This document shows, piece after piece, positions 10,421 to 62,529 of a stretch of DNA of 64,000 nucleotides (position 1 is its first letter; each line of letters begins with the position of its first letter). The stretch lies in the NCBI GenBank assembly GCA_024679065.1, contig JAGIQG010000021.1:30256001-30320000 (forward strand). Direction: 5' to 3'. The notes below the pieces were generated by a model. It was not told the DNA's origin, ran no database searches, and was given only the letters and a program-made list of their open reading frames with translations. The position numbers were made by a program, and so were the translations under genes. The stretch is from Sphyrna mokarran (lineage: Eukaryota).

Positions 10421-10522
10421 TTAACGTCCTGTGCTTTGAGTTCGCACCAGGTTCATATCTTCATACACTGAGTTTGGAACTCTTGCACGCATTGGCTGGT
10501 CATGATGGCACTTTCTCTTCAA
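10421..10522 (-). CDS. CD7: CD7-like exon 4, cytoplasmic tail (LKRKCHHDQPMRARVPNSVYEDMNLVRTQSTGR*)
   Basis: Acceptor gttttcttctttag|, phase 0, YEDM (YxxM) motif, TAA at 10423-10421; candidate AATAAA at 9929-9924. Confidence 0.88.
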   Translation of the reverse strand: MKRKCHHDQPMRARVPNSVYEDMNLVRTQSTGR

Positions 10523-13500: not shown

Positions 13501-16500
13501 TTTCCATGATCATCTCTTGCCTGCTGGGCGGCAGGGGAAAATCTATCCCAACGTATGTGTCTCAGACAGGTATGAGGTGAAGCAGGTGATAATGCATACA
13601 TAGATTGTCATTTTCAAATAGATGGCAAAGTTCATATAATGTATGCTTTTACCAACTGAACATTCTGTATAATTGTTTCACAGCACTAATTGAATTTAAT
13701 TTTACTTAATTTGTTTCACTTTTACTGGTTGCTATCTATGAAGTTTAAGATGTATTACAAAAATATTAGGAACTTACACGCCAGAGTAACAGAGCCAGTG
13801 CACAGATAACGACAACAATTGAAGAAACGACCACACCCATTATTAATGGATCCGTATATAAACCTTTTCTGCATTTTTCTGCTTCTATACAGTCCCCTTT
13901 ACAATGTTCTTGTTTGGACTCTGAAAAGATATAAAACAGTTTTGATAAAAGGATTGCACATTTTATATCTTCACATTGTCATGAAATTATTTTCACCTTC
14001 TACCATCTTCCTGTGTTCTTTACAGAAAGTAAAAATCAAATCATTTGTTCACACAGTATGTGTGTCCCTGGTTCGGCCAGCACTTGTTGTCTAACCATAA
14101 TTATCCTTGAGAAGTTGGTGGTGAACCACGTTCTTGAATCTCTGCTGTTCATTGATATAGGTACACCCATGGGTGCTTTTTGGAAGGCAATTTGAGGTTT
14201 TTGACTCAGCAACTGTGAAGGAATGGTGACATAATTCCAAGTCAGGACAGTGTGCAGATTGCAAAGTGTGGGATCCTTTGCATGGTTTGCTTCAGTTAAA
14301 ATATTTTATTTTAAGATATTTCTGCCTCTGCCAAGCTTTAAAGCTAATGTGGCCATATTTTAAACTCAGCTGGGAATTGTTGAGTTAACTTGGAAAGTTG
14401 ACTGCATTTTTTGAAAGTAAACTTGAAAGCCCAAATAGCTGCTAATTGTTAACGAAAGTTGGTACCAGCAATTTCAATAACAGGAATAAGGATTCATATA
14501 TTGTAGCAACTGTTATCTGTTTAGTTAGTTCAATACTGCGCGAGGTTTAAATCGAGGATTTAAATAAATATGAGGATTAACTTCTGCTGGTCCCTTTCTC
14601 TTTCTCTCTCTCTCTTTCTCTCTCAAGTAATCCTTTTTCGATTTCTAATGTGTTAATTTTAAATGATGCTCAATAAAAGAATTTCAACGTTGGACCAGTG
14701 CTGCCATCTTTATTCTAGAAAGTGAACAGACACAACACAAGGGAATCTGAAGTTGTTCTTTTGCATATGCTGCCTTTCTCTTTCTGGGTTGAAAAGCAAT
14801 GGGTTTGGAGGGTGCTATCAAAATAGGCTTGATGATTTGCTGCTGCACATCTTGTAGATAGTACACACTTTTGTCACTGTGTGCCAGCGGTGGATGGAGT
14901 GAAACCTTAAGGTGGTGGATGGATTGCCAGTCAAGCAGGCTGCTTCATCCTGAATGGTGTCAAACTTTTTGAATGTTGTTGGATCTGCATAATCCAGGCA
15001 AATGTAGAGTACTTAAACTCTTAACTTATGCCTTGTAGATGGGGGACACCCTTTGGAGAGTCACAAAATGAGTTACTTGTTACTAGGTATTCAGCCTCTA
15101 ACCTCCATTTGTAGCAACAATATTTATTTGGCTAGTGCAGTTAAGTTTCTGGTCAATGGTAACTCCATGGGCATTGACAGTGTGGGATTCAATGATGACA
15201 ATGTGAACATGAAAGGGAGGTGGTTAGATTCTCATCTTGGTGAAGATGACAATTGGCAGGCATTTGTGTGGCATGAATAAGGTCTTGTGAAAATCCAGTT
15301 GTAACGAAGCGCTTTCGCACACATCATTTGAAGCACAAAAGACATTTATTAATAAGAAAAACCATTCAGCAGTACAGCAGCCACCTGCTCCCCCTACGTG
15401 TCTAATACCTAAGAGAGATCTCCAACTCCTGAGTGATAATCGATTCTGAATCACGAGCCAGGTGACCCTTACTCCTATTTTTGTCCTTAAAGGGGCAATC
15501 AGTACAAAGCACCACACCAATTATGAGCTGCTGTATTTGTCCTGAATCTAATACATTGAGTATTGTGATTGTGCCACACTGCACAATTTGTGGTATCAGT
15601 GTAAAGATAGGACTTCATCTCACAACGACTGTGCCATGGCCATTCATAACAATATTGTCACATACAGACAAATCTGCAACAGGTAGGTTTGTGATGAATT
15701 TTCCTTTCTGTTCTCTCACCACCTATCACATGTCCAGTCTGGTAGATTAATCCTTTAAGATTTGGCCAACTTGTTCATGTTGGTACTGCCGAGCCACTTT
15801 CAGTGATGAACATTGAAGTCCCCATGACCGTAATCATTGTCTACACTGTGCTGCCAATGGGACATTATATACCCAGTGATGGTGATGAAGAAGCCCTGGA
15901 CATTGACTGTAACCATAATTCATGAACAGGACCATGTTCAAGTGTTACTTGACTATTCTGTGTGTTGGCTCTCATGTCTTGCATATGTCCACAGATGTTA
16001 ACAAGGACGATTTGCAGGGTTAGCTGGATTGAGTGTGAATATATTATTATCTGTGCCTAGACAATACAGGGTGGCACAAAACATCTGTATTTAATATTCT
16101 GTGAACACTTGTAAATTTATAATGCAAGAAGTCTTCTAACAAATGTCAATGGCTGAAATGATGCTTATGCACAAACCAAAGCCACTTAATTTTGGAGGGC
16201 AGGTTAGTTGATGCACATCTACAAAAGAAGCATAGAAAAAATGCAACCTTGTTTTGTTTATAACTGAATAATCATGTTGTAATTATTTTCAGAGAAAGCT
16301 AAACCCTAAAGCAGCATATAAAAGGAGAAAAAAGCAAAATGGTGTGGATGCTGGAATCTGAAACAAAAAATAGAGAAAATCTCAGCAGGTCTAACAGCAT
16401 CTGTGGAGAGTCTGGGTGATCCTTTGTCAGAGCTGAGGAGAAGGGAGAAAAACTGAAATACTTTTACAAGGGAAGATCTCCTAGATAGATTTTCAGGCTA

Positions 16501-19500
16501 AATCAAAACATGCTCCACATGTTCTATTCAAGAATGCTTATAAAGTGGACTGAGGGAATTTCTAATTTCCTCACTGGTACTATTCAAATTTCTTGTGCAT
16601 AGGGCCATGCCTAATCTTCCACAATGCCAAGTATGACTCTAACGAATGCATATTTTCTGCCTGAAACTGATTGACTCCAATTTTGGTGCTGCACTCAGTC
16701 AAGTGCTGCCTCACTTGTAGAGTTTAAATCTTTTGCCTGTAGTTGAACCAATGCTACAATTAGTTCAGGTTCCGAGTGGTCCTGGCAAAACCCAAACTGG
16801 GCATCAGTGAGAAGGCTATTTCTAAGCAAGTGCCACTTGATACACTGTAGATGCCCCTTTCCATCACTTTGCTGATGATCTGGAATAGACTGATGGAGCA
16901 GTGATTGGCCAGGTTGGTTTTCATGTGCAGAACATACCTGGACAATATTACGCTGAGTGGGTTGTTGGGTGGAGGGTGGGGTGGTGGAGCACGGTGGTTG
17001 GAGGGAGGGCCCATGGGTGATAGTTGGCCACGTTCAACTCAGTAAATATGCACCAGGAAGAAGTGGTGAATCGTGAATCTCTTGCTGGGGCCTGCAGGAA
17101 GTCAATGCCCCTCCCCGCCAACCACCACCACCACCACCACCACACACCATCACGTCATGGAGTTAATGGTCTTGACAAGGGCTGCATGATGGCATAGCGG
17201 TCAGCACTGCTCCCTCACAGTGCCAGGGACTCAGATTCGATTCCGGCTTGAATCGCTGTATGTGTGGAGTTAGCACATCCCCTACCCCCATGTCTGCATG
17301 GATTTTCTCTGGGTACTCCGATTTCCTCCCACAGTCCAATGAAGGGCGTGTTGGGTGGATTGGCAATGCTAAATTAACCCTTGTGTCAGGGAGACTAAGG
17401 AGATTAGAGTAAATGTATGGGGTTGCAGGAATAGGATTTGGATGGGAATGTGGTTAGTGTAGACTTGATGGGCCAACTGGCCTCCTTCTGCACTATAGAA
17501 TTCTATAATTCTAAGAACAACAAAAATGACATATGGTCTCACATAGTCATTCTTTATGTATAATTGTTAAGCAGTAATTTTTTTTTCAGTAAATTACATT
17601 GGATGAAAACTTGAAAGAAACATACCTGACACAAACAACATTGTTCCTTGTGCAAATACATCTGATACTGTAACCTTTCGTATTCCAAACACACAATAGT
17701 AAAAATCAGTGTCATTTTCCTGGAGATTTTTGAGGGTTACAGTGAAATTCTTTTTGTTTCCTTTAAACTCAATGCGGTTGACATATGATTCGTGCACCGT
17801 ATTATTATGATCGTGGACGTAGATCAGATCAGCGAAAGAGGAAAGATTTTTTCTTAAATAGGTGCCCACAAAGCTACCATCTTCAGATGAAAATCTGCAG
17901 TTTATTGAAACAGATCCTCCCTTTTTCACTTGTTGAACAAAAGTAGACTGGAAAATGCAATTCTCTGCAAAATGTAAAATTAAAGATAAAGTCAATGCGG
18001 TTATAATGCTCTGAATGTGATCAATGGTCAAATAAAACGTTTTCTTCATGTAAATAATATCATAATCATTACATTTCATGAGTCATATTAATATTTTAGA
18101 GGATTTTTAGCTTTGGGAAGAATAAAATTAGACTGTGGAATCTTGTAGCTTAATTTTTTTCAGCAACTAATGGAATTTTGAATTTCTTTTCAAATATTAT
18201 AGGTCTCTGTGATAACAATATGTTATTAATTAAAGGAGAATAGAGATGTAGAAAGCAGGGGTCATTTTGTGTAATGTCTAACACTCCATGTTATAGGAGA
18301 AAGGTGTCTGCCTTTCAACAGCTGAATCTAGAAACTAAAATTTCGTTCAGGCCTGAAGCAGGCACAGGTAGTAAGATGCACAAGTACCCCACACCTAATT
18401 TTGGTGATACAGGTGACATGAAGGCACAGTGGTTAACATTGCTGCCTCATGCTGCCAGGCCCGAGTTCGATTCCCAGCTTGTGTCACTGGCTGCGAGGAA
18501 TCTGTGTGGGTTTCCTCCGGATGCTCCGGTTCCTCCCACGATCTGAAAGGTGTGCTGGTTATATGCATTAACTATACTAAATTCTTCCTCAGTGTACCTG
18601 AACAGGTGCTGGAGTTTGACAAATTGGGGATTTTCAAAGTAGCTTCATTGTAGTGTTAATGTAAGCCAACTTGTAACATTAATAAATAATAAAAGCAGTA
18701 CAAATGTCATGCTGCCTGCTCATCTCAATGATAGTCGTGTGCAGATCAGTGCAAAATACATAGTTGCAGGGGCCTGACCATCTGTGGCCAGCACAGTTTA
18801 AAGCTAACCTGCAACTATAAAAGACAGCTTGTTTCTCTTAAAGTGTAAATGCATTTTGGCTGCAACAGTTGGTGGAGCTGATCTTAAAGTATGTAACTGA
18901 AGGAAAAAGACTATTAGTGGAACATTGGCCAGAGAGAAGACTCCCAGGTTTGCTGATCTAGTTTTAGAGTCCTTATGCCAGAAGATCAAAATTCTTGTCA
19001 GAGGTTAGAAGGTTTTGAATATAGGCTGCATAAAGGGAATAGGATCAGGAACAAGGGAGATGAATTCCGGGATTCAGGCTAACATATTGGAAAAATTTCA
19101 TAGATCTCCAAAGTGGCCAAAGTCAGTAATTTATCTTCCACATCTCCTACTCTTCACACCATCAACTTCCCTGCATTCAGTGGTGAGGAATGGGCACTTG
19201 ATGCTCCATCTTATTCTCAAACAATAATCACTGCTGCAAGCCTCATATTCATATCTTGAGTTCCAGCTATTCAGCTATGACAGGTACATTATCTAATCAT
19301 GATGCAGCACAGTCACTAACGCTCTTCTCTTTCTCTTTTGCATGAAATGATCATACGTAACAGGAGGAAGCAGCAGATAATGCTTAAGGAACAGCATTAA
19401 TCTCCATCTCCTGAGTCCTTTGAAGGAGATAGTGCAACATATTATAAGTCCAGCAGTGACAGCAACTAATGCATCCATAACTACTGAACACATTCAGGAT

Positions 19501-21930
19501 GATGGTATGTTCCTGCCTTATGCAATTTTTCAAATTCCACACCACTTTCATCCTGCAATCTAGTGCAAAATGCAACCTACAGATAGTTTGACAATGAATT
19601 TCTTGCATTCTACACAATGCTCTACCCTCACTCCAACTTTCCCCATCTACAATTTTATTTTCTGATACTAAATAATTGCTGCCTGCCCTCTAGTGCAGCC
19701 TCATCATGAATGTTATGGGCAAGAACTGAAGATGCACCATTACTTGATCTGATACTTGCAGCCACCAATTTAGAAGTTGGCACTGGGTGTATTTCAGGGA
19801 TGCACGCACTATGGTTAAATCACGTAACTTATACATCTTTGGACACTAAAGAGTAATTTAGCATAGCCGATCCACCTAACATGCACATCTTTGGACTGTA
19901 GGAAGAAGCTGGAGCACCTGGAGGAAACCCACACAAACATGGCGAGAATGTGCAAACTCCAAACAGAATCTAAAAATTTAAAATGGCTGACTTGGGGCAA
20001 TGAGAGATAGACATTGTCACTGATGTCCTTCCCAGAAAACTATTTTAAAAAGCCCCTTTATAATCGAGTTGCTGCCCGATTACCCTCAGGTCATGCATCA
20101 TCTCATTCTAAGGTAGCAGTGCATGCTTTCTAATCACACACAGCTATCAATATTGACACCCTCGGCAACCACAAGGAGGTACGTCTGTACAATCTTGCCA
20201 AGAACTCCTTTTTAATTTACTTTCCCATTCTTGTACAGCTCTACAAGCATTTTTGACTGTCAAATTTGAAAATATGTCAGTATTTTCTTACATATATCTC
20301 TATGATGGAAAGATTACAAGATCTTTTTCTATGGCTGATTTTAAATCTCACAGATTCTCAGTTATTTTAAGAGCTGTGAATCTAAAAAAAAATAGTACAG
20401 GGCTAACTCATGGTGGCTTTTGGTTGCAGCAATGCTTTGTGCACGTCTTCAGTTATTGAAAAAAGAATATAAAACTTTTGCTCCAATATAAAGGTTGCCT
20501 CACCTTTTGGATTGTATGCTGACAACATCTTCAGAAGGGATATAAGGCACAGATTCACTGACAGCACTTACAGGTTTTCAAATTGTCCACCATATTTTTA
20601 ACCATAATCTGCAATCGGTGTGTAGATTGAACTCATAACCCGATATTAGATAAGAAAGATGTAAACATGCTTTCGCATTTGTCTAAAAAATTGTGTCAAC
20701 TGTGTGAATTTTCTGAGACAAATTGTCAATTTTTTGAAAATTTCTGCAAGTTACAAATGATCAATTAAACCCATCATTATGTTGAAGATGATGGTTAGGT
20801 ATATAGTTGCAGACATAAAATATACAGTCGGATTTAAGTCATTGCATTAAAAGAATTTGTGAAGCTAATCAAAACTATTTTGAAGCGACTCATCAATTAA
20901 TCTATAGGAACGCACATATTGATGTTCATTTGTATTCTCCAAAAATGTTCAAAACTGGGATTGAAATCACTTTGAAAATATTTTTGATCAAAAATTTTAA
21001 ACGAAAGAAATATGAACCAACTTTTTTGACCCTTTTGAATTGACTATTATCCGATTGAGAGCAAATGAGGCTATTGAAGCTCTGATTAATTTTAGTTGCA
21101 GCACTCCAGTAATGATGCAAATATACTCTGCAGTTTGAAAGAGTGTTTTGTAATAATGAAAACCTTTACACGCTGAATGTAATTCAAATTTTTTAAGAAG
21201 CTGAAAGGCCAACCAGTCTTGTTAAATCAAGATTTATGTTTAAACCTCTTCACCGCTCAAAGATCTCCATTAGTTCAATGCTGTTCTGACAAAATCTGTA
21301 ATTATATATTTTCACAGTAATTTGCAGTAAAAGTCACGGGAATTTCACAGGAGTTTAATTGCAGTGATAATGTAAGCCTTACTTTGACTAATAAATCAAT
21401 TTTGATTCTTTAACTTTTTTTTGTATATAAATTGCAATTATTTTAACACCAAAATGTTTTCTTTCATCATTTTTTTAAATAAAATTTATGTTAAAGTTAT
21501 CACATTGTCACCTAATAAAACATTTGCATGCATTTCTGTAAGTTCCTTCTGAGATAGAAACATGTTCCCAGAGAATGCTGCAGAGGCCTGAGGAAATTCT
21601 ATGCCATGTCAAAGAACAGAGAAATAATCCAAAACTTAAAGAGATAGGTTTGAAGGGGAATTTTAAAGTTAAAGTGAAGCATGGAGGGAATACATTTGAG
21701 GAGACTTTCAAAGACACATCGAATATATAAGATAACTTCAGCCTCATGTACTTTATAAAACAGATCTTGGATATTTTCTTTGTGCTAAAAAGCACTAAAG
21801 TTTGTGTTAACACACCACAATTCTTAAACGATTAAAAGACTTCACAGAAAAACCTCTTCCTACCTGCGCTTGATCCTGAAATCATTAAAAAAACGAGAAT
21901 CTGTAGGGTGTGAACTGTTCGCGCAGCCAT
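10421..21930 (-). CDS. CD7: T-cell antigen CD7-like gene, 4 coding exons (21930-21864, 17964-17626, 13920-13778, 10522-10421), 216 aa
   Basis: Exons of 67+339+143+102 = 651 nt join in frame with GT-AG junctions (phases 1,1,0). The V domain resembles CD7 (GGSVSINC..GTYLRK..DLIY..RIEFKG..NFTVTLKNLQENDTDFYYC..VFAQGTMLFV; YL in place of the C-strand Trp). Single TM; tail has VYEDM as in mammalian CD7. Confidence 0.9.
11030..13145 (+). mobile_element. Degenerate, internally deleted CR1 in CD7 intron 3
   Basis: Endonuclease and RT fragments (ORFs 12350-12700 WQMKFNLEKCEVMHLG, 12902-13084). Confidence 0.9.
11620..11855. mobile_element. Penelope-derived hairpin element, 95-bp inverted arms, 14-bp TSD
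   Basis: Arms 11620-11714 and 11729-11823 (1 mismatch seen); TSD tcacaggtgaagtg at 11606-11619 and 11856-11869. Confidence 0.85.
13778..13920 (-). CDS. CD7: CD7-like exon 3, stalk + transmembrane (ESKQEHCKGDCIEAEKCRKGLYTDPLIMGVVVSSIVVVICALALLLWR)
   Basis: Acceptor tatcttttcag|, donor |gtaagt; phase 1 in, phase 0 out; about 21-aa hydrophobic helix. Not in the ORF track. Confidence 0.88.
17183..17512 (+). mobile_element. HE1/V-SINE-type SINE
   Basis: Head, core and CR1-type tail. Confidence 0.8.
17626..17964 (-). CDS. CD7: CD7-like exon 2, Ig V-set domain
   Basis: Lies within ORF 17594..18079; acceptor ttttgcag|, donor |gtatgt; B- and F-strand Cys, DxxxYYC motif, J-like FAQGT G strand; sequons NLS, NNT, NFT, NDT. 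Confidence 0.93.
18412..18692 (+). mobile_element. SINE with same head/core but an alternative tail (..gtgttaatgtaagcc..aataaataa)
   Basis: Tail shared with copies at about 53580-53855, 57455-57740, 58165-58372 and 61372-61630. Confidence 0.8.
21864..21930 (-). CDS. CD7: CD7-like exon 1, signal peptide MAARTVHTLQILVFLMISGSSA
   Basis: ATG at 21930-21928 (aagaATGG), hydrophobic core, phase-1 donor CAG|gtagga; joins exon 2 in frame. Confidence 0.82.
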
Positions 21931-22204
21931 TCTTAATGTTCACAATATTTTCCTGTTAACACATTTTACTGAGCTCTGATGCACATCTAAATTTCCGCTT
22001 CAGTGTCATTCAACCCACATAAAGAGAAAGATAAAAAAAACTGCACATTTCATTTAGACATAGAAAAGTAGAATGCAGTGAATCCAGTCAACAGAAATAC
22101 AATATAAATATTTTACAATCAGCTGATAATAATGCTTGTGCATAATTTCATATGTGCATTGGGCTGAAAATTGTGCATCTTGTAATTATGTCATCAAACA
22201 GAAT

Positions 22205-22570
22205 CATAGTGCATTAATCATAATCACCAACAATGCAGAAATAGGCCAGTTGGCCCACTGAGTGTGCACTAACAACAATCCCAACTAGGCCATATCCCCA
22301 CATATTTATCCTGCTAATCCCCTTGACCGTAAGGAACAGTGGCCAATCCATGTAACCGACACATCTTAGGAAAGTAAGGGATAATTTAGCATGGCAAATC
22401 CATCTAACCTGCACATTTTTGGAGTGTGGGAGGAAACCAGAGCATTCAGAAGAAATTGACGCAGACACATGGAGAATGTGCAAACACCACTCAATCACTC
22501 AAGGCTGGAATTGAACCCAGGCCCCTGGTGCTGTGAGGCAGCAATGCTAACCAATGTGCCACCATGCCAT
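22205..22570 (-). mobile_element. HE1/V-SINE-type SINE just upstream of CD7 exon 1
   Basis: Complete head, core and tail in reverse orientation. Confidence 0.85.
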
Positions 22571-28479: not shown

Positions 28480-28565
28480 TGAAGCAGAAATGGGCAGCAA
28501 AGCATGCCAGGAAAAGTGCAGTGAACATAGGCGAATAATTTTCTTGAACCAATATTTGTTAACAC

Positions 28566-50600: not shown

Positions 50601-51917
50601 GGGAGCTAACTTCCTTGTTCTCAGTCTCATCGATAATCCCACCCCTCAGCCTTTCTGGTTTAAAGTTCCCCCAGAAGTCCTAGCCAGTCTTTCCACCAAG
50701 ATATTAGTCCCCCTAGAATTCAAGTGCCACCCGTCCTTACTGTACAGGTCGCACCTGCCCCTAAAGAGGTCCCAATGATCTATGAACCTGAATCCCTGCT
50801 CCCTGCTCCAGTCCCTCAGCTATGCATTCATCTTGCACCTCATTCTATTCCTGCTCTCACTTTCCCGTAGCGCAGGCAGCAATCCTGAGATTACTACCTT
50901 CGCTTTCTTCTTTTTCAGCTTCCTACCCAGTTCCCTATAATCCCTTTTCATGACTGTCTCCCTCTTCCTGCCTATGTCTGTAGTACCCATATGCACTACA
51001 ACTTCAGATTCCTCACCCTTCCCTTTCAGGATGTCTGGGAGGTGTCCAGAGACATCCTGGATCCCAGCTCCAGGAAGACAAACCACCATCTGCAACTCTC
51101 GCCTGCGTCCACAAAAACGCCTGTCTGAACCCCTCACAGTGGAGTCCTCCTACTGCCTTGCCTCTGTCTTCCTTAGATTTTTGGCATACTGGCTCAGCTT
51201 TAGAGAGCGGGCCACCGCTGCCTCCCTCGGATGAGTTGTCCCCCCTAGTAGTACACAGGCAGGAGTACTTATTATGAAGGGGGACACCCTCCAGTGTGCT
51301 CTCCATCACCCGAGGTTTCCCCTTCCTAATAGTTACCCACGTGCCTTCTTCCTGTTGCCCTGGTGTGACCACCTGCTGATAGCTCTTATCAATTATCTCC
51401 TCATTCTCCCTAATGAGACGAAGATCCTCAAGCTGCATCTCCAGTTCTTTAACCTTGTCCCGTAGGGACTGCAGCTCCACACACTGAGCACAGGTATGGA
51501 TGTCTGGGAGACCAGTAGCCTCCAAGACCTCCCACATCTGGCACTGGCAACAACATACCGGTCTCACATCCATTATTTGCCCCCTTTTAGAAACCCAGAG
51601 GAAAAAGTAATAAAAACTTATAACTTATGCTGTCTCACCCTTCTGGCTTAGGCCTGTGAGCCAAAGCCCTTACAGCCACACAAAAAACAAAAAGCAAAAC
51701 AATCTTACCTGCTCTCTCTCTCTCTCTCTCACCGCTCCATTTTATAGTAAGGTTAAAAAAAACTCTACCCAAGTGTCTTTGCGACACTTTCCGGCATCCG
51801 GTAAATGTTTTAAAAAAAACTAGTAAAAATTAGTTTTAAAAAAAATCGCTCTACTCACCCACAAGCTCTCCTGTCAGAAATTGCTGCCTCTCTTCAGTGC
51901 CCCCAAGGAACAATGAG
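47690..51917 (-). mobile_element. Full-length but frameshifted CR1/HER1-type LINE (5' UTR, ORF1 zinc finger/coiled coil/SGNH esterase, ORF2 APE endonuclease + RT)
   Basis: ORF1 pieces 51013-51573 and 50820-51137 (CxxC..CxxC, VCLPGA, VVVHMGTTD); ORF2 pieces 50556-47769 ([39 protein letters not shown]); GTTCTAT tail; 13-bp TSD accatta(c/t)tatta at 47677-47689 and 51918-51930. Confidence 0.95.
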
Positions 51918-54900
51918 ACCATTATTATTATTTGTGAGAAACGCTGCTCACGATCAAACAATTTAGTTGAGTCAAATTCCAAAGGAGCAAGATATGTTAT
52001 TTAACGTTCTTGCAAGACAGGGTGTCCGAAAGATTGGCACGCTCACCTCAAGTTTGAGCAGGCATTTTATACTATTTCACAATCATATTAATCAATTACA
52101 CAATACTTTGCTCTCCCCTAATTGGTGGTCTTTGTCCCACTAGTGTGTTGTCATTCCCCTATTGGCTCATGGTGCCCCACATTCCTATCTCCTTTAACTC
52201 CCCTCCCCACTTCTAGCCATGTTCCCTGTTCTCGCAAGAGTGTGTATGTAGTGTTGATGTAATATTCTTTCTCAAGGGAACTCATCTGTTTTATCCAGGA
52301 CTATTAACGTGTCCAGTTCAGACCAGCTGTAATCAATCTTCTGCTAACTTAATTACTGATGTCCCAACTATCTCAGTGTCCTTCATCCCCCTGTAGTTGG
52401 AAAATATACTTAGTTGCAGAAACAACACTTTTTGCTTATCATTTGTCTCACAGTCTGAACCTCATACATTCCTACAGAATGTGGTGTCTGTGCCTTACTG
52501 CACACTGCACATCTATGTTATTCTTACACAATGGGCAGTTTCTTCACTGTCCTTGATTAATTTTCTGTTAGCATCAGCGAGTCTGTGTTTGTGACTAAAA
52601 CCACAGTTGTTCCCATAAGGTGGCTTGGCAATGTGCCTTAGTCGAGTCTACCTAACTTTTAGGCTATTTCTCTATAGTGTGCAGATATGTGTTAACAGCA
52701 TCTATACCTGTTGTTTACATATTGAAAAAAACAGACAAGAAATTTTCCCGTTTTCTTGCCCATTTTACACCTGGAATTTTTCTGAGAAAATTCTGATCAG
52801 GATAGAATTAGCCACCCAATTATCTGTACTATAATGAACCTTTATACATGCATGTTCCAAAGGCTGGATGTAAATTTGCATGAAATGGAACCAACGTTAT
52901 AGAATTCTTACTTGAGAAGTGCCCTACTCAGAAACACTGGTAAGCAATCATGTTGGACTGTTATCTTGCCCTGTAATTATATACATTTTCCCAACTTACT
53001 GATGTTCAATATTGGACTGATTTATAATATAAGGAAGGAGGAGTGTGTTAAACAATCTCACAGTTAGAAGTAATTAATTGACCTGGGGCCTTATGACACC
53101 ATGAAATCAGTGTCAGAATTTAATAAACTGCAACCCATTGATGAGAAAGTTATGGATCCATCAAATTTAGTTTGCATTAAAAGCAAAATTGAGTCTCAAA
53201 ACTGATGGGTCTCTTGAGATATTTTGAATTCCTATTGCTATTTACCTGCAGCAAATGCAAAATCCCAGCCACTGATTTTACTGGATGGGAGTGAATGCCT
53301 GTTGAAATATGGCACCTGGACCTTTGAACCCATGAGCTAATAATGGGGCTGGTGACTTCTTGTCCGTCCTTGTCACATGATTGCCCAGTGCCCTTGCCTC
53401 TGCATAGCTAAATCACATGTGATTACGCATGGCAAATTGTCCCATCAACAAGCAGAAACACCTTAAAGCTCTGTTCCTGTCATTGGGAGTCATAATGCTA
53501 GAAGATTCCACCTAAAACTGGATTATTCCTTTCCAATTCCACTGTCAATTCAGAGGATATATTCCCAAAAATGTAACTGGCACAATGGTTAACTTTGCTG
53601 CCTCACAGCACCAGGGTACAATTCTGTGCTTGTGTCACTCTGTGAAGTGTGCAAGTTCTCCTCTGGCCTGCGTGGTTTTTCTCTGGGTGCTCCAGTTTCC
53701 TACCACAGTCCGAAAGAAATGCTGGTTAGCTGTACTGGCCATGCTTAATTCTTCCTCAGTGTACCCAAAGGGTGCAAGAATGTGGTGACTAAGACATTTT
53801 AGTAACTTCAGTGCAATGTTAATGTAAGCCTCCTTCTGACTAATAAAGAAATAATAAATATTTTTAATGCATAGAAATTAGAGGAATATCAGTCTTTAAC
53901 AAAATACCAACTTGCAATGATGCAAATTTTAACCTCAACTTTAATTGGAGACTACCAAAGATCTTTGTGATAAGCTTTGTCTAAGTATTTAGAGAGGATT
54001 AACTAGTCGAGCAATATATTTATTGAATGGATGTAGGCCAGAATATCAGCAAATAAAAAATTAGCTGAAACAAGAAACTTTATAAGGTGCAATATTTTTA
54101 TTTTATATAAAATAAGGTATAAAATCATCACTTAACATTTGTGCTAAGCACAAAATGTGGAACCCAGTATCTTAAACTAGTTTTTAACAATAAAATGATA
54201 ATTTATTAACTTGTATCAATGGCTCTGTTATAGGGAATAAAGTAATGAAGCAACCTGTTAGAGGGTCAATTTGTTTCACATTATAGTAATTTACAATAAT
54301 TAGTGTGTTAATGACCAATTTTCACAACTTTGCAAAGTTTCAGTTTTTCATTGTTGGTGCCTGCAATTCCTTTTTAATTGAATGAGAAATACAACCCCAG
54401 CAGAGAAACATCTTTGGAATATTTCTGTAATCATCCAGCAGGAATACATTTTGTTTTGTACAACTGGGTTAATAATGTTCTTCTTTTTCAGAATGCCGTG
54501 GTATCACTCAATAACCATACCCTATCCAGCTGTGAAGCAGAGATACTCTTTGAAAGGCACTATGTTAGATTGAGGGCCAGGCCCTCTTATGTGCAGTTTT
54601 TTGTTTAGTGTTTTACCAAATGTGCCAGTGGACAACCAATGTGTAGCATTGATTCTTAACAGAGGAAACAGTAAGAAATCATCGCATTAGGACAATCAGA
54701 TGTCTTCTCTTCTTTGGCAATTCCTCAGGATGAAGGAAGATTTGCTATCATTCCGGTTCCATTCGTTCTGAGATGGCTGATCTATCGAATGCACAATCTG
54801 TAGATTCTACTACATGGAGAGTAGATGGGCCAACTAGATGGGTTGCCTAGAGGTTTATGTACCAGCTCCAATGCATCAATGCTACCTTTGTCCCTGACAA

Positions 54901-54934
54901 AGTCTCTCAATGTATTCGCTGCCTTTTTTTTTTA

Positions 54935-56105
54935 AGAGCAACACAGCACGGGAAACAGGCCCTTCGGCCCAACGAGCCCGCGCCGCCATCATAACTATAT
55001 AGTAGCAATTCCATTATCCTAATATAGATTTAGATTATTCCTAATATGGAAGACTCTCACTATAGGGACAATTTGTTTCCCAATCAGCCTAAGAGCGAAT
55101 TTTTGGGTTGTGGGAGGAAACCGGAGTGCCCGGAGAAAACCCACGCAACCATGGGGAGAACGCACAAACTCCCGCAGACACTGGCCCAATTCCAAGTGTC
55201 TGCACAGCCACATCGATAGTCTCTGAGCTGTCATGGTGCCCTTCAGATGGTCCACATAAAGCACTCATTTACGACATGAAGTACCAGGCAACCCATGAAT
55301 CAACATCCAAGAGCTGTCCTCGCAACACCTGCCGAATGCATGCTCATTGTTGGTCAAGTATGGACCGAATTACCTGTGGAAAAAAAGCCGTAGTTAAACA
55401 GTCCTACTATATCCCTCTATCTGCATACCGCTAATGTGGCTGTCCAAGAGACCCTTAAACAGCCCCAGCGTGCCTGCTCCCACCACCTTAATCGGCAGTG
55501 CATTCCACACCCCCACTACCCTTTGTGTGAAAAACTGCCCTCTAATATTCGTCCTATACATAGCCCCCCTCACCCTATGGCCATGACCCCTCGTCCTATC
55601 CATTTCTGAAGGTGGAAAAAGTTTACCTCCATTTACTCTATCTATACTCCTTATAATCTTATACACCTCTATGAGATCCCCTCTAAGCCGACGTCTTTCA
55701 AGGGAAAACAACCCCAGTCTATTTCATCGTTCCTCATAAGACAGTCCTTCCATACCAGGCAGCATCCTGGTAAACCTCCTCTGCACTCTCCCCAAGGACT
55801 CCACATCCTTCCGATAGTACGGAGACCAGAACTGGGCGCAGTATTCCAAGTGAGGCCTAACCAAAGTTCTATACAACTGCAACATCAAACTCCTACTCTT
55901 GTATTCCATACCCTTTTCTATGAAAGCTAACATACTATACGCCTTCTTTATCACCTTCTCCACCTGTGAGGACACCTTCAGAGACTTGTGAACCTGCACC
56001 CCCAATCTCTCTGCGTCTCTATGCTCCGTATAGTTTTACCTTTTATCCTATAATTCTCTTCTACATTTTTCCGGCCAAAATGCATCACCTCGCATTTGTC
56101 CGGAT
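54935..56105 (-). mobile_element. 5'-truncated CR1 (diverged subfamily, also with a SINE in its 3' UTR) inserted in an RTE remnant
   Basis: ORFs 55724-56005 and 55394-55711; SINE-like segment 55080-55245. Confidence 0.9.
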
Positions 56106-56144
56106 TAATTCCATTTGCTCCGGATTAAATTCCATTTGCAAACC

Positions 56145-56470
56145 ATTTCCATGCCTTCCCAAACGCATCTTTGACATTTTAGTTGTCCACAAGCTAGGAT
56201 CTCTTGCGAGATGACAGGGATGTTTGACTCCCTTCAAGTATACTTTGAGACTAGCCCTAAAGTATTTCTGATGTCCTTTGGGGAGTATCCTACTATGGCT
56301 GAGTTCCACATATAGTAATTGCTTCAGGAATCTGTTGTCAGATGTATGAGTGTCCTGTCCTGGCCAACTCAGCTTGTTTTGACTGACCTGCACCTTGAAG
56401 CTTGGTGAGTCAGTTTGGGAGAGAACACTGCTGCTGGATTTGGAGTAATTTGTGAAGGCACCATCAGTGA
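56145..56470 (-). mobile_element. RTE-clade LINE C-terminal remnant (probably continues at about 54700-54925)
   Basis: Translation SDNRFLKQLLYVELSHSRILPKGHQKYFRASLK matches the RTE motif DxRxPKQLLYxEL..GxQxKRxxDxLK. Confidence 0.65.
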
Positions 56471-57186
56471 TTTTTTTTATACAAGTTCTTTGAAAGATCT
56501 GCTATAGGGTTCAAGTTTCAAAAGCACATATTGGCATGAGGAAAATGGAGAGAAAAGAGTTTGTGCAATAACGTAGCCTTCATGTCTCTCATTTTGGTGG
56601 AAGAACACATGCTTGAGATCTCAGGAATACTGTGTGGTTTATTAAAGATGGGAGACAAGTTCAATTGCAGTTACTATAGAGGAATTTCCTACAGACTGCT
56701 ACAGGGCAGTTAATTACAAAGCTCCTCCTTAAGTCTCTCTGCCCCATGTCCAGGAAGCTTCTGCCAGTTGCACGATGTTTTCATCCACCAGGAAGAATGA
56801 CATGACACTCACTGCACAGAAAAATGCAAGGAACAGTTCCAGCTGATGTAAATGGTCTTTTTTGATCTTATAAAAGGCTTTTTTCTCTCTCAACCATGAA
56901 GATTTATAGGGTATATTCCTCATATTTTACTGCCCTCACGTATTTGTCACTCAGCTTACTTAACGATGTTATGCAAGATGGATCCTCACCAGCACAAGCT
57001 CTATCTCAGATGAAAACTGCGCCCAATGAGACTGATGCAATATTCTGCACCCAAAATAATTCAGTTTCCAGATAGACACTGAAGTGGAAAATGACATTGC
57101 CTAAAATAGTGTGTGGTTTCAATTCACCTTGCTTCATTTGCATGATCCAAATGGACATGGATGAGCTTAACAATTGCTGTTAAACA

Positions 57187-57209
57187 TCAAGCGACCAGAG
57201 GATTGATAT
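57187..57209 (-). CDS. Probable terminal coding exon (DINPLVA*)
   Basis: Strong acceptor tttttgttttctcttaacag| 84 nt after the previous donor; phase 1; TGA at 57189-57187. Confidence 0.6.
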
Positions 57210-60200
57210 CTGTTAAGAGAAAACAAAAATCTTAATTGATAACAGAAGACACAAGACTTTGAAAAATAGGCTAACTTTTGTAAATGTACCTACCCTTCAG
57301 ATTCTGCATACACTTTCTAACTGCTGAAATAAAAACAAAACAATAATTAATCCACTGTTGAGGCACGTAATACTTAATATGAATTAACCTGCCCGGCTGT
57401 GAAAATTTGCTGTTCATTATTCCTTATATTTCTAAAATTCTGAATCAAAATTTATTTCTTTATTTATTAATCATAAGTAGGCTTACATTAACACTGCAAT
57501 GAAGTTACTATGGAAATCTGCTGGTTGCCATACTCCAGTGCCTGTTTGGGTACACTGAGGGAGAAAGTAGCATGACCAATGCACCTAACTGGACTGTGGG
57601 AGGAAACCTGAGCACCTGGAGGAAACCCACACAGATACGAAGAATGTGCAAACTCCACACCGACAGTGACCCAAGCTGGGAATTGAACCCGGGTCCCTGG
57701 CACTGAAGCATCAGTGCTAATCACTGTGCCACTATACCATCTAATAATATACTAAAGGCAGTAATCTCAGTACAGTTGCCATCATATTGACAGTTATATG
57801 CAATATTCACATTTTCCTTAATGACCATTCAAATAATTTCTGCTACTTCTTTAGCCATAAACCATAAAAAACTTCATAACCAAACTCATGCAAATTAAGT
57901 TCAATCATAATTCTGTACCAAAGATTACAGCCCTCTGATTTGACAAGGAATGCACTGATTATGTTACCAAATTAGTAAATCCAGAAACTATAGATTTATA
58001 TACCAACTGTACAAGTTCTAAAACTTAATAAAGATGAAGAATCTTGAATATTCTGAAGTCTAGATTCGTAGTTCAAATTCCAACATCACAAAGTGAGCAT
58101 TCAAGTTCAGATATTTCTTTTAAAAACAAGGCTGCGACCACTACCCTGAAGAATGGGCAGCACAGTGACCTGTGTAGAGACTGCACATTCTCTCCATGTC
58201 TGCATGGATTTCCTCCGAGTGCTCTAGTTTACTCCCACAGTCCAAAAGATGTTCTAATTAGATTAAATTCTCCCTCAGTGTACATGAATAGGTACTGGAG
58301 TGCAGCGATGAGGGGATTTTCACAGGATCTTTATTGCAATGTTAATGTAAGCTTGTGACACTAATAAATAAAATTCAGTCATTTTTACAACAGCGTCCTC
58401 AAAAATGTTTTGTAGGAAGGAAAACTGTAGTCTTCTACTTGTAGCACACTCATGTGGTTGCCCCAGCCTTTTTCCAAATTATTGATTTATTACATGACAA
58501 TGGGGATGGTCTACCATCAAGTCATAACAACTCTAAAATAAATACTAACATTGCCAGAGATGGACATATCTAAAGATTTATTTGTTTCCTTCCTTTCTTT
58601 TCCTTCATCCATTCATGTCTCCCTTTACCAAACACCATAACTTGGCGGGTGGGGAACTGCCAAGATAACTAATTCCACACACCTCTGCCAATGTTGCTTG
58701 CTGAATGTGTCTTAATAGAAGGTGCTCAGAGCAGTTCCGTTTGCCTCATCTATGCTTTTCTTCATTGAGAAGCAGAAAAATGTAAATTATGATTTGTTTC
58801 TTGTCTCTCTGCTCATCACCCAACTAAATCTAAAGGTTGTAACTCATTAGAGACAGCTTAAGGTGTCTATAGAAGTCTCCTGAGCAAGCTAATCAGCAAA
58901 CATTTTCCTGATCAATAACGGTATTTGGTTTGGCAGGTCAGCCAAGAGCTTGCTAGTGAATTAGAATGGCAGACAGAATCTGAAACTGCTCAGAATATTT
59001 GAGATTCTTCATCTTTATTAAGTTTTGGAACTTGTACAGTTGGTACACAAGTCTATAGTTTCTGGAGCAGCAGAGGCTGAGGGGAGACCTGATCGAAGTC
59101 TTTAAAATTTTGAGAGGATAGATAGGGTTGACCGTCAGAATCTTCTTCCCAGAATTGAATTGCCTCATACTAGAGAGTCTGCACATAAAGTAGGAAGGAG
59201 AAAGTTCAAAGGAGATTTGAGGGGCAACTTTGTTTTTTTACAGAGTCGTAGGTTTCTGGAACACTCTGCCGTTTACAAAATTACTTGTTGTAATTATTTG
59301 AAGAATAAGTAATATAAACTTACTCTGAAACTGTCTGTGGATCTCATATTCATTTTTGTCTGCTATATTCCACACAGTAAGAAGTCTCACAACACCAGGT
59401 TAAAGTCCAACCAGTTTATTTGATAGTAATCCCACAAGCTTGTAGGATTAGTATCAAATAAACTGGGTGGACTTTAATCTGGTATTGTGAGACTTCTTAC
59501 TGTGTTTAGCCTAGTCCAATGCCAGCATCTCTATGTCATATTCCACACAGCACAGGTATAATTGTCTTTAGGGATATGAGAGGGACATTTAAAGGTTTTT
59601 AGATAAACACATGAATATGCGAGGCACAGAGAAGTATGCACCAAGGGAAGGCAGAAGGTATTAGATTAATTCGGCATCATGTGGGCACAACATAGTGGGC
59701 TAAAGGGCCTGCTCCCATGCTATATGGTTTTATGTTCTATGTTCTATGTTCTATAATTGAATTGGTTACCAGATTATAGGCACGTGCAAAGGCTGAGGAA
59801 AAGTATTTTCAACAGAAGCTGATATAATCATTCTTGCAATAATTACAACTTTTAAAAGGGGCCAGAAACATTTTCTATGATCACCGTACCTGGCTGACTT
59901 GTTTTCTGCAGTTGCAAAATGACCAAGACTGCTAGTGCAAGAAAACCTACTCCAATAATCACAAAGACAGCAACGAGATTTGATTTCTTCCTTTTTACTG
60001 GTTGAGTTGATTTCAAGTCTGAAAATGAAAATGCATTGGTAGTTGCGGGGGGAGAACAATTTAATTAATTGTTAATTCTAGCATCAATCTTTGTATGCAT
60101 AACTTATTTCTATGTTTCCATGACTAAGACAACAGCAAAGTCGACATTCAAACAATACTCTGAGATAAAAGACAACAAGAGTTTATAAAGATCCACAAGC

Positions 60201-62529
60201 TTCTAAGAGGATATAGTCATGAGTATTAAATAGTCATGTGGCATTATTCACATATTGAGAGAAAATAGAATGAATTTAAGTTTTTAAATATTAATTATTC
60301 ATTAAAATTAATAATTAAAAAAGAATTTGTTGAAATGATTTGAAGAATAAGTGCTATGAACTTACCCCAAAGTTGTCCCTGGATCTCATATACATTCTTG
60401 TCAATATTCCACACAGCACAAGTATAATTGTCTTCCGAGGTAATTTGCCTTTTATTGATTTGAAGTATGCTGGTGATCTTCATTAGTCCTGCTGGGGTTT
60501 TATTACTGTAACTATTAGACTCAGATGTGAGATTTCCATTGACAAACCAATGTATCTGTGCCTGTGGATATCCAGTTGTTTCACAATTTAGATTTATAGT
60601 GCTCATCGTATTTGAGTGTAAGGTCACTTCTGGCAAACTGTATGGAGCTAAACATGATTATGCTATTATTATTGTGAAGAAAAAACATTTCTGCACCCAG
60701 TAAAAAACAACAGTTCTCAGTCAATAGTAATTCTGAGATTTACCACAATAAATTAATTACAATTAGATCAGCTTTACACTGAAATTACTTTGATAGTTAT
60801 AATGGAGAAAATATTTAGTGGTGTCACTTTGTGATTTTGACCTGTGCTCTTAATATTTCAATTCAAAACTCATTAGTCAGATTTTGTTTTGCCTTTCTTT
60901 CTATGTTTTGTGTCAAATATATGCTTGTATAGAAATCTTGGATATTTTTGTAGAAAACATCTGCAACCTCTGCAAATCAAGCTTATTTAGTATTGATAGA
61001 CTGGATATTGAGTTTGATTACATAGTAAGTAGGGAGTGTGCATCAAATCATAGAACATAGAAATTGGAAGCAGGGCCGAATGGCCTATTCCTTCCAGCCT
61101 GCTCCACCATTCATTTTAGCCATGGCTGATCATCAAATTTAATATCCTGATTTCCCTCTTCCTCCCATATCCCCTTTGCACCAAAAGCAATATCTAATTT
61201 CTTCAAATCAGACAATGTCTTGGCCTCAATTATATTCTGTGGTACTCACTAGATGAAGAAATTTCTTCTCACCTCATTCTAATAGATTCACCCCTTATCC
61301 CTAGTTCTGGATTCCCCTACCAAAGGGAACATTTTTTCTGAATCTACACTGTCTAACCCTCTTTAGAGAGTTTAAAAGTTTATTTATTGGTGTCACCAAT
61401 AGGCTTACATTAACTCTACAATGATGTTACTGTGAAAATCCCCTCAATACCACACTCCAGCATCTGTTCAGGTACACTGAGAAAGGTTTAGCATGGCCAA
61501 TGCACCTAACCACCACATCTTACGGTCTGTGGGAAGAAACCCACTCTGATACAGTGAAAATGTGCAGACTCTACACAGACAGTGACCCAAGTCCCTGATG
61601 CTGTAAGGCAGCAGCGTGAACCACTGTGCCAATTTTATAAGTTTCTAGGAGATCCTTTCACTTTTCTAAACTCCAATGAATACAATCCTAACCTTCTCAG
61701 TCTCTCCTCATATGACAGACCTGCCATTCTTGATATCAGCCTGGCAGCCTTTCACCGTACTCCCTCTGTACCAAGCAAACCCTGATTATCCTGCCTTACA
61801 ATGTGATCACCTAAATCATCAATGCACCCTCCTCTAAGTTAATGGCTAAAATATGTTTTGAGATGTTCCAAAGACATGAAAGGTTTTCTAGAAGTGCACA
61901 ATCACGATTTCTTCTCTCAACACGATTCAGGTTATAGCTTACATTTTGCCTATCTCACATGTCAAGATTTTAGATGCGAGAATAAAATAAGAATTTGATG
62001 CTAATTAAAGGCAACCAATACAAGGGAGAATATGAGAAAAAGGATAATCTTACTCACCTTTAACCCTGAATATGATGTATTCATATGTGTGACCGGAAGT
62101 TGTTTGCAAATAATATCGATAAGTCCCTTCATCTGTCAGTTGTGTTTCCTGGATTAACAGTGATACATCATCTGAATTTGGATGAACTAATTTAATTCGA
62201 CTTGGAGATACCGTATTATCTGAACTGAATACGAGACTTCTATTGTCCTCCGTTTTACTCAGTTCAATGCGAATATATGTTTGTACTATTGATGATTTGA
62301 TTGAGCATGTTAGTTTAGTGTCTTCATTTAATATTCCTGTCACTACATCCTCACAATCTAACGTCACAAAGTCTGAAAAACAAGAATTTCCATTAGTTCA
62401 CATTGCCTGAGTGATAATCGGTGTTCGATGAAGTATAAACTGAGGAACACTTTAGTACTTACTCTGTGTAAAGGATGGACTTGCGCATACGATAATATTA
62501 AGGAAAATTATTGCACGGTGTAAACCCAT
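57187..62529 (-). CDS. SECTM1-like / B7-family type I membrane protein (leader-V-C-TM-short tail), about 281 aa, 6 coding exons
   Basis: Exons 62529-62463, 62372-62058, 60647-60366, 60018-59890, 57323-57294 and 57209-57187 total 846 nt, all phase 1 with GT-AG. The V domain has a SECTM1-type Cys pattern and the C domain has B7-family motifs. The last two exons are less certain. Confidence 0.82.
57294..57323 (-). CDS. Probable 30-nt cytoplasmic exon (AVRKCMQNLK)
   Basis: Strong acceptor ttgttttgtttttatttcag| (NAGNAG), donor AAGG|gtaggt, phase 1-1. Confidence 0.62.
57455..57740 (-). mobile_element. SINE, alternative-tail subfamily
   Basis: Well-preserved head, core and tail. Confidence 0.85.
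57980..59066. repeat. Inverted duplicate pair of about 76 bp (57980-58055 and 58991-59066)
   Basis: tccagaaactataga..accaactgtacaagtt..aaacttaataaagatgaagaatct..aatattctg and its reverse complement; about 6 mismatches. Confidence 0.85.
59283..59568 (-). pseudogene. Relic duplicate of the 3' end of the C-domain exon plus splice donor and intron start, split by a hairpin element
   Basis: With 59378-59537 and one TSD copy removed it reads KDNYTCAVWNIADKNEYEIHRQFQ|gtaagt, versus EDNYTCAVWNIDKNVYEIQGQLW|gtaagt in the real exon. Similarity continues about 40 nt into the intron (acttattcttcaaat..caacaa). Confidence 0.85.
59378..59537. mobile_element. Hairpin element of the same family, 13-bp TSD
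   Basis: Imperfect palindrome centred on aagctt; TSD atattccacacag at 59365-59377 and 59538-59550. Confidence 0.85.
59890..60018 (-). CDS. Stalk + transmembrane exon (DLKSTQPVKRKKSNLVAVFVIIGVGFLALAVLVILQLQKTSQP)
   Basis: Acceptor ttttcattttcag|, donor CAG|gtacgg, phase 1-1, 21-aa hydrophobic helix. Confidence 0.86.
60366..60647 (-). CDS. B7-type Ig C-domain exon (APYSLPEV..LNCETTGYPQAQIHW..ITSIL..NYTCAVWN)
   Basis: ORF 60295..60636; acceptor catgtttag|, donor |gtaagt. The APY linker and CxxxGYPxAxIxW are characteristic of PD-L1/PD-L2/B7-H3 membrane-proximal domains. Confidence 0.9.
61048..61785 (-). mobile_element. CR1 3' fragment with nested SINE (about 61372-61630) in the V-C intron
   Basis: catagaacatagaa tail, YEERLRRLGLYSLEF remnant, SINE body. 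Confidence 0.75.
62058..62372 (-). CDS. Atypical Ig V-like exon (NFVTLDCEDVVTGILNEDTKLTC...DVSLLIQETQLTDEGTYRYYLQT...IFRVK)
   Basis: ORF 62050..62367; acceptor ttgtttttcag|, donor |gtgagt; E/F-strand V motif SLLIxxTQLxDEGTY, but Tyr in place of the F-strand Cys. Confidence 0.9.
62463..62529 (-). CDS. SECTM1/B7-like signal peptide exon MGLHRAIIFLNIIVCASPSFTQ
   Basis: ggtaATGG start, hydrophobic core, donor A|gtaagt, 90-nt intron to the V exon. An upstream acceptor-like tattagcag suggests a 5' UTR exon further upstream. Confidence 0.85.

Follow-up and report, generated by a model that had tools for sequence, protein, structure and literature searches.

The 64-kb stretch of Sphyrna mokarran DNA analysed here (the window; assembly GCA_024679065.1, contig JAGIQG010000021.1, positions 30,256,001 to 30,320,000 of the forward strand, 64,000 nucleotides) was found to contain a pair of protein-coding genes on the minus strand: gene A, coding for a CD7-like receptor, and, upstream of it, gene B, a transcribed member of a B7-like membrane protein family. 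Proteins of these two kinds are linked in eight other shark species, and in alligator gar they occur within one gene model. The best explanation of these results is an ancient two-gene cassette of CD7 and a B7-like gene, in which gene B would be the distant counterpart of SECTM1; taken as a whole, this reading is in our judgement evenly balanced between right and wrong. An earlier note on this DNA had proposed a co-oriented minus-strand pair with the B7-like gene upstream of the CD7-like gene, and the exon models confirmed this arrangement.

Structure and linkage of the two genes

Gene A (21930-10421, minus strand) consists of four coding exons and codes for 216 amino acids, a length equal to that of four shark relatives. 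Exon 1 (21864..21930), identified by tblastn, sequence and translation, carries the start codon and the signal peptide and ends in a phase-1 donor, and exon 2 (17626..17964; 339 nt, phase 1-1) codes for a VJ-type immunoglobulin (Ig) variable (V) domain (Pfam V-set, expectation value (E) 1.9e-11). Exon 3 (13778..13920), located by a hydrophobicity scan, tblastn and translation, codes for a stalk with three Cys followed by the transmembrane (TM) segment, and exon 4 (10421..10522), taken from the list of open reading frames (ORFs) and the sequence, for the cytoplasmic tail with the motif YEDM and the stop codon. All the splice sites were canonical, with intron phases 1, 1 and 0, and tblastn with four shark CD7-like proteins recovered all four exons. 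Exon 2 showed 66% identity to the Scyliorhinus torazame protein, and the AlphaFold2 model of the V domain had nine strands and a predicted local distance difference test score (pLDDT) of 86. The details foreseen in the earlier note (a single V domain, stalk Cys, a YxxM motif and four exons) were thus borne out, with three stalk Cys, YEDM and four coding exons. Throughout this work the exons were searched singly and no joined-exon model was used for any search or fold; natural relatives served as whole proteins.

Gene B (62552 to about 56227, minus strand) has six coding exons and codes for 281 amino acids, arranged as signal peptide, V domain, constant (C) domain, TM segment and short tail. 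The first coding exon (62463..62552) contains 5' untranslated region (UTR) and the signal peptide, with the ATG at 62529, and was covered by a transcript contig of run X1 with 0 mismatches. The V exon (62058..62372) was defined by Pfam (V-set, E 1e-9), family alignments and a transcript contig, and the C exon (60366..60647, phase 1-1), whose borders were taken from the transcript contig, codes for a B7-type Ig C domain (Pfam: Ig_3 1.8e-11, C2-set_3 3.5e-7 and CD80-like C2-set 7e-6). The TM exon (59890..60018) was recovered by tblastn with the Mustelus asterias relative P0007 (81% identity) and by the contig joints. It is followed by a cytoplasmic micro-exon of 30 nt (57294..57323), bounded by the transcript joints 57323>59890 and 57209>57294 and by canonical splice sites, and by the last exon (56601..57209; contig positions 680-1288 of 1662), in which the stop codon ends at 57187 and is followed by the 3' UTR; judged by its length, the contig extends to about 56227. 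Similarity searches found none of the tail exons, and the micro-exon was found only by means of the transcript joints.

Run X1 is a public run labelled 'RNA?' in which 24% of the words sampled from a 2.7-kb stretch were present, about the exon share; its contigs were aligned to 56601-62600 and tell neither expression level nor strand. One contig of 1662 nt joins the V, C, TM, micro- and last exons with 0 mismatches and with GT..AG at every intron, and a second consists of the leader exon plus 23 nt of 5' UTR, again free of mismatches. A third contig, which departs from the leader by 8 differences, probably derives from an expressed paralogue. The V plus C (B7) layout that had been claimed for gene B was confirmed by the transcript contig and the domain matches. 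Within the intron after the TM exon, a C-domain exon relic (59537..59569, minus strand) was detected by tblastn as 11-14 residues aligned to the F-strand region of family C domains, with a weak E of 0.035-0.08, which hints at past exon duplication or decay. The summed X1 contig depth was very high (6,700 to 38,000) in three stretches of gene B introns, 57401-57800, 59201-59600 and 61401-61600, whose behaviour is that of abundant and probably transcribed repeats.

CD7-like and B7-like proteins were found on records of exactly equal length in 8/8 of the shark species that yielded a CD7-like protein, namely Scyliorhinus torazame, S. canicula, Stegostoma, Rhincodon, Chiloscyllium plagiosum, C. punctatum, Hemiscyllium and Heterodontus. 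Accession order was taken as a proxy for gene position. In the C. punctatum draft three accessions are consecutive, GCC35554 (CD7-like, chiPu_0014039), GCC35555 (B7-like) and GCC35556 (B7-like, chiPu_0014041), the first and the last of them lying on a 1.1-Mb scaffold. Heterodontus XP_067914191 (B7-like) and XP_067914192 (CD7-like) are likewise consecutive, GCB61899 and GCB61903 of the S. torazame draft are four apart, and the accessions are about ten apart in C. plagiosum, Rhincodon and Hemiscyllium.

Outside the sharks, the alligator gar protein P0086 ('SEPT9 protein, partial') is a fused model composed of a B7-like part, two CD7-like V domains and a septin domain (Pfam septin family, E 1e-115). 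Residues 1-278 are 93% identical to the spotted gar 'CD276 antigen homolog', and the two V domains, which carry Y-V-R-R at the C strand, matched the shark CD7-like profile (hhalign probability 97.1%, E 6e-11; BLASTP 3e-10 and 2e-9). The fused model implies that the ligand-like gene, the receptor-like gene and septin 9 are co-oriented neighbours in this order. The human 17q25.3 cluster comprises SLC16A3, CSNK1D, CD7, SECTM1, TEX19 and UTS2R, and SEPT9 is a 17q25 gene (accessible part of PMC10334611), so the position of the gar pair beside septin 9 points to the region in which human CD7 and SECTM1 are located. Since the pairing of the two genes recurs across sharks and in gar, it appears to be inherited and not accidental.

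Several points weigh against this reading of the linkage. In Stegostoma and S. canicula, as in the RefSeq sets for S. torazame and C. punctatum, hundreds of accession numbers separate the two kinds of protein. The fusion in P0086 is probably an erroneous gene model, its septin is called SEPT9 by the depositor's name only, Pfam resolving no more than the septin family, and since fish may have more than one septin-9 copy the equivalence with 17q25 is tentative. In addition, the best matches of the second gar V domain among solved structures were antibody kappa chains, human CD7 being 16th with 25.9 bits, as the first non-antibody chain. As regards the earlier proposal that the receptor-ligand cassette predates the split of cartilaginous and bony fish, an old linkage is supported by the 8/8 sharks and by the gar model with septin 9; the SECTM1 identity of the ligand gene, which was the other half of the proposal, is plausible but unproven.

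Gene B and its possible relation to SECTM1

The V exon of gene B has Cys at positions 6 and 22, a Tyr at the usual place of the F-strand Cys and no C-strand Trp. In the V alignment of the family (38 rows, 35 elasmobranch and 3 ray-finned, some of them isoforms or near-duplicates) both Cys were present in 35/35 elasmobranch rows, the F-strand place was occupied by Tyr in 33 and by Phe in 2, and the C-strand Trp occurred in 0. The shark-type pattern was also found in 7/7 V domains of two characiform teleost proteins. SECTM1 has a comparable pattern: its Ig-like region starts at Trp33 and contains only two invariant Cys, 38 and 55, which form no classical disulfide, together with the invariant motif G113-x-Y115-x-W117-x-L119-x-G121-x-Q123 (accessible part of PMC4603632, as are the other statements taken from this paper). 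SECTM1 was compared here by this published description, not sequence to sequence; counted from Trp33, its two Cys and the first four motif residues lie at 6, 23, 81, 83, 85 and 87, and the corresponding positions in the gene B V exon are 6, 22, 82, 84, 86 (Tyr) and 88. The V domain of gene B accordingly contains G-x-Y-x-Y-x-L, with Tyr in place of Trp117 of SECTM1.

In mammals SECTM1 adjoins CD7 (PMC4603632). Gene B stands upstream of gene A on the same strand. Human SECTM1, too, lies upstream of CD7 in the same orientation. The occupation of the mammalian SECTM1 slot by gene B therefore makes a distant counterpart of SECTM1, with the IgC domain still present, its likeliest identity, although we put the probability that the two are homologous just short of even. 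Mouse Sectm1a has a skippable 'stalk' exon between the Ig and TM exons (accessible part of PMC3769348), and the C exon of gene B occupies the place of this exon; that the mouse stalk might be a decayed C domain is speculation. The label 'SECTM1-like' given earlier to gene B is in agreement with its position, its orientation and the match of the odd Cys pattern, and departs from the outcome of the searches, none of which returned SECTM1.

The evidence against homology with SECTM1 is of several kinds. In the V domain, G121 and Q123 of the SECTM1 motif are unmatched, the invariant Gly of gene B coming three residues later, and the three ray-finned rows (Amia, gar and eel; 3/3) retain the classical F-strand Cys and Trp, although they also carry the extra Cys at position 6. 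SECTM1 has a single Ig domain, in contrast with the V and full C domains of gene B.

The searches did not return SECTM1 either. The full-library HMMER search with the gene B V exon gave 33 proteins at E <= 1e-3, and SECTM1 was not among them (16 were named, and the 17 unnamed ones had 365-2476 amino acids), nor was it among the 29 matches of the profile search or the Atlas rows, which contained generic V-set clusters only. It was also absent from the solved-chain matches of the V exon and of its first 32 residues, in a PDB that perhaps holds no SECTM1, and from the best 60 of the 412 solved-chain matches of a ten-sequence V profile. The model of the gene B V domain was too uncertain to be trusted (pLDDT 61), and Foldseek with it returned generic Ig matches among viral and solved structures. 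A poxvirus SECTM1-like protein is mentioned in the accessible part of PMC13223139; a scan of viral contigs with the gene B V profile gave no match. Finally, Sectm1 was reported as not found in zebrafish, chicken, platypus, wallaby and opossum (PMC4603632).

An alternative that accommodates these points is that the B7-like family is an ancient neighbour of CD7 without being the source of SECTM1: its members would be divergent ligands of the B7-H3/PD-L type for another receptor and would have been lost toward mammals, and SECTM1 would have arisen separately, with a convergent Cys pattern. We consider this a substantial possibility, at rather less than an even prospect. In its favour, the NCBI names within the family are CD276, PD-L1-like, PD-L2-like and BTN1A1-like, and never SECTM1. 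The best single-unit solved matches of full-length Mustelus P0007 were PD-L2 (41.0 bits), PD-L1 (40.4), CD276 (34.3) and CD80 (32.8), the alignments leaving the first half of the V domain uncovered, and Amia P0036 scored 61-63 bits per unit against CD276. Since the holostean and eel relatives retain the canonical Cys, loss of the F-strand Cys appears to have recurred within the family. The family may accordingly be a B7-H3 offshoot in which the Cys was lost perhaps more than once. The failure of every search to return SECTM1 and the reported restriction of Sectm1 to eutherians (PMC4603632) point the same way.

Against this alternative stands the coincidence that it needs, namely that the same-strand slot directly upstream of CD7 in sharks, gar and eutherians is occupied by Ig genes with an additional Cys that precedes the B-strand one by 16-17 residues, and that the domain positions agree with those of SECTM1 within one residue. 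Moreover, the published absence was obtained by tBLASTn only, with a fast-evolving protein and without cartilaginous fish, and, as far as the accessible part of PMC4603632 goes, without inspection of synteny in the CD7 neighbourhood. A distant counterpart of SECTM1 is kept as the preferred identity of gene B.

Whatever its relation to SECTM1, gene B belongs to a family that spans 16 elasmobranch species, often with several copies per chromosome record; the profile search gave 27 relatives at E <= 1e-68, of which 25 were elasmobranch proteins and the others Amia and gar. The C exon alone had CD276 (1.5e-10), PD-L2 (1.1e-6) and PD-L1 (about 7e-3) as its best solved matches. The V exon alone gave no solved match better than E 0.037, and the V profile of the family matched NCAM, JAML, sodium-channel beta-2, BTN1A1, CD276 and B7-H4 at 1e-6 to 3e-5. 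That gene B is simply an orthologue of PD-L or B7-H3 was rejected, since its V domain disagrees with this and its matches are divided among several B7 members. Compared with Mustelus asterias P0007, gene B showed 64% identity in the V, 87% in the C and 81% in the TM exon, which indicates either that the V domain diverges much faster or that the C exon has been homogenised. None of the four family accessions sought in the PD-1 paper PMC12151841 was found there.

The architecture of the relatives varies. Several of the shark and ray proteins P0007, P0009, P0012 and P0013 end in T-D-V, A-D-I or T-Q-V, resembling PDZ-binding ends; a PDZ-ligand C-terminus was rejected as a family trait because gene B of the window ends in P-L-V-A. 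Among the ray and skate relatives P0010, P0014 and P0044-P0047, one form is V-V-TM, another has a V domain alone before the TM segment and others are longer (373-392 amino acids); the V-only skate protein P0014 has a SECTM1-like architecture. The teleost relatives are long multi-V models (eel P0005 with 7 V domains, Hoplias P0006 with 5 and Prochilodus P0030 with 2), possibly tandem arrays merged by annotation. The F-strand Cys is lost in the characiform proteins, as in sharks, and kept in the eel.

Identity of gene A and surroundings of the pair

Human CD7 was the best solved single-domain match of the gene A V exon (40.7 bits, E 2.1e-9, in one stretch). On a profile of four shark relatives it scored 48.5 bits in one domain (independent E 5.3e-12) and was the top non-antibody solved match; the four entries that ranked above it were multi-V antibody constructs whose best single domains reached 18.6-23.7 bits. 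In the alignment of gene A with human CD7, Y-L-R replaces the usual C-strand Trp in both proteins, and both have a J-like G-x-G-T followed by V-[ST]-E. The YEDM block of the tail is kept in 7/8 aligned shark proteins, and in human CD7 this motif has been linked to phosphatidylinositol 3-kinase (PI3-kinase; accessible part of PMC2193045). In addition, relatives from four species (five protein clusters) bear the NCBI name 'T-cell antigen CD7-like', and rows 1-2 of the Atlas structure search with gene A were CD7 clusters. Sequence profile, tail motif and gene layout thus support the earlier description of gene A as CD7-like, and on these sequence grounds gene A is probably the shark orthologue of CD7. 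In Scyliorhinus canicula two CD7-like proteins were observed, P0002 and P0067, one of which is shorter (195 amino acids) and has no YEDM tail.

Two results weigh against this assignment. A Vδ1 chain of the γδ T-cell receptor (TCR) totalled 45.6 bits on the CD7-like profile versus 48.6 for CD7, which is a small margin, and the profile search, limited to proteins sharing words with the query, returned eight shark proteins only and no CD7-like protein from rays, chimaeras or tetrapods. The same word-limited search returned no bony-vertebrate CD7 sequence, and the orthology call was for this reason made without a tree.

The other identity considered for gene A is that of a single-V lymphocyte receptor that merely resembles CD7, such as a CD28-family member of the CD28X type, an NKp30-like protein or a CD300/CMRF35-like protein. 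CD28X has a conserved YEDM-type tail and occurs in sharks (accessible part of PMC11599192). One relative of gene A is named 'CMRF35-like molecule 1', and the Atlas feature search, which was unspecific, listed ICOS, CTLA4-like, NCR3-like and CD83 clusters at scores of 0.96. The fold searches with the gene A model were not family-specific either, with TCR V-delta, antibodies and nectins in the top rows and CD7 not listed. On the other side, CD28X was rejected because gene A lacks its signature Y-x-C-x6-P-P-P-x4/5-G-x-G and has Val instead of Glu before the tail block (V-Y-E-D-M, not E-Y-E-D-M). An NKp30-like identity was rejected on account of the signalling tail of gene A and of its TM segment, which is uncharged; the TM segment of NKp30 is adaptor-dependent and carries a charged residue. 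Together with the rank of human CD7 among the non-antibody matches, the common Y-L-R and the gar relatives that share one gene model with septin 9, this makes another receptor unlikely.

The intergenic space (21931..56600) contains fragments of long interspersed nuclear elements (LINEs) and other repeats, and no further gene was found in it. Of 20 further ORFs scanned with Pfam, 4 matched reverse transcriptase (RVT_1) or endonuclease families, 1 matched RVT_1 below the cut-off (19.5 bits vs 29.6) and 15 matched nothing, in line with the earlier statement that only repeats lie between the two genes. No further Ig exon was detected in the window at E <= 1e-5 (tblastn, 70 proteins), and none of the human 17q25.3 genes SLC16A3, CSNK1D, TEX19 and UTS2R was present in it. 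Several copies of one LINE family (23155-24368, 28576-28980, 47769-51573, 55394-56005 and 4443-4754) have almost the same C-terminal ORF segment, and endonuclease parts are retained in the one at 47.8-51.6 kb. A full-length match to the U2 spliceosomal RNA (35106-35303, plus strand; Rfam RF00004, 57.2 bits, E 1e-8) may be a gene or a pseudogene copy.

An assembly gap (25970..26296, a run of N) lies in the intergenic space, 4 kb from the start codon of gene A and 30 kb from the 3' end of gene B; it touches neither gene and therefore interrupts no reading frame. No repeat continuity was seen between its flanks, self-BLAST being uninformative either way, and the spacing of about 34 kb between the two genes is an estimate because the continuity of the DNA across the gap is unproven. 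That the linkage in the window is an artefact of joining across this gap, whose position between the genes and flanks without repeat continuity would allow it, is nevertheless very improbable, since independent assemblies of eight other shark species give same-length records and several consecutive or near-consecutive accessions.

Proposed function and relation to known systems

Gene A would be a membrane receptor of type I, its single VJ-type V domain being followed by a Cys-bearing stalk and, in the tail, by YEDM. Gene B, which is expressed and lies on the same strand some 34 kb upstream, belongs to a multigene family of B7-like membrane proteins in elasmobranchs, and these proteins would display a variable V domain on top of a B7-type C domain. 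On other cells, the gene B protein may engage CD7 of lymphocytes through its V domain, and the signal would pass through the YEDM tail. We infer this ligand-receptor relation, like the homology with SECTM1 and the signalling itself, and base it on the conserved cis-linkage, the parallel with SECTM1 and CD7 and the fast-changing V domain. The evolutionary proposal that goes with it is that SECTM1 did not originate in eutherians but descends, in trimmed form, from an ancient B7-like (V-C) ligand gene which has stood directly upstream of CD7 since before the split of cartilaginous and bony fish. CD7 and its ligand would then form a costimulatory pair of primordial age, linked in cis and comparable to CD28/B7 and NKp30/B7-H6, and its ligand side would have been expanded in sharks into a family with fast-changing V domains. 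This proposal is tentative, its truth being in our estimate slightly less probable than its falsity.

SECTM1 has been described in print as eutherian-specific (PMC4603632), and the accessible part of a 2026 review on SECTM1 mentions no non-mammalian counterpart. Neither CD7 nor SECTM1 is mentioned in the main text of the CD28-family survey (PMC11599192), and no literature on shark CD7 or SECTM1, or on the evolution of SECTM1 within the B7 family, was found by title in a search that mostly did not extend to subscription journals. CD7 is a major marker of T and natural killer (NK) cells and a therapy target with a poorly understood biology, and SECTM1 is its only established ligand. A conserved cassette of CD7 and a B7-like gene in sharks and gar would, if true, mean that the pair goes back 450 million years, assign SECTM1 to the B7 family or to its vicinity, explain the odd Cys pattern of SECTM1 as inherited and supply a receptor-ligand axis that is missing from the account of early costimulation in the recent CD28-family and PD-1 surveys. 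If the link with SECTM1 fails, the result would still be an unstudied, expressed and rapidly diversifying B7-like family linked to CD7.

Among the known systems, CD28X and the CD28 family (accessible part of PMC11599192) resemble gene A in the single-V receptor, the YEDM-type PI3-kinase motif, the occurrence in sharks and the presumed B7-type ligand. Gene A differs from CD28X in having no P-P-P loop motif and in the residue before YEDM, and the CD28X marker genes given in that part of the survey, pudp, sts, anos1 and nlgn4x, are not in the window. The B7 ligands (CD276/B7-H3, PD-L1, PD-L2 and CD80) share with gene B the order signal-IgV-IgC-TM-short tail with one phase-1 exon per Ig domain, the A-P-Y-S at the V-C junction seen in the aligned CD276 chains, and the C domain, for which they are the best solved matches. 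Unlike them, gene B has a V domain without the canonical disulfide and the C-strand Trp and sits beside CD7, not at the known B7 locations, and no single B7 member is its clear orthologue. NKp30 and B7-H6, reportedly a co-evolving Ig receptor-ligand pair known from sharks (the account is attributed to Flajnik et al. 2012), are alike in the pairing of a VJ-type single-V receptor with a V-C ligand of B7 type and in their ancient origin. They are unlike in that the TM segment of gene A is uncharged, not adaptor-dependent, and is followed by a signalling tail, and in that the C domain of gene B is B7-H3/PD-L-like.

With SECTM1 (K12), gene B has in common the position upstream of CD7 in the same orientation, the type I membrane topology with an N-terminal V-like Ig domain, the two Cys 16-17 residues apart and an aromatic residue for the F-strand Cys within G-x-Y-x-[W/Y]-x-L. 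Gene B differs in its full B7-type IgC domain and its membership of a multigene family, and no pairwise or profile similarity between the two was detected, SECTM1 being known here by description. Gene A is like CD7 of human and mouse, with a single VJ-type V domain, stalk, TM segment and YEDM, four coding exons and an Ig-type, ligand-like gene directly upstream. The identity of the V domain to that of human CD7 is low (48.5 bits on the shark profile), the stalk of gene A is short and Cys-rich whereas human CD7 has a stalk of proline-rich repeats, and TM segment and tail, which are coded together in exon 4 of human CD7, lie on separate exons in gene A.

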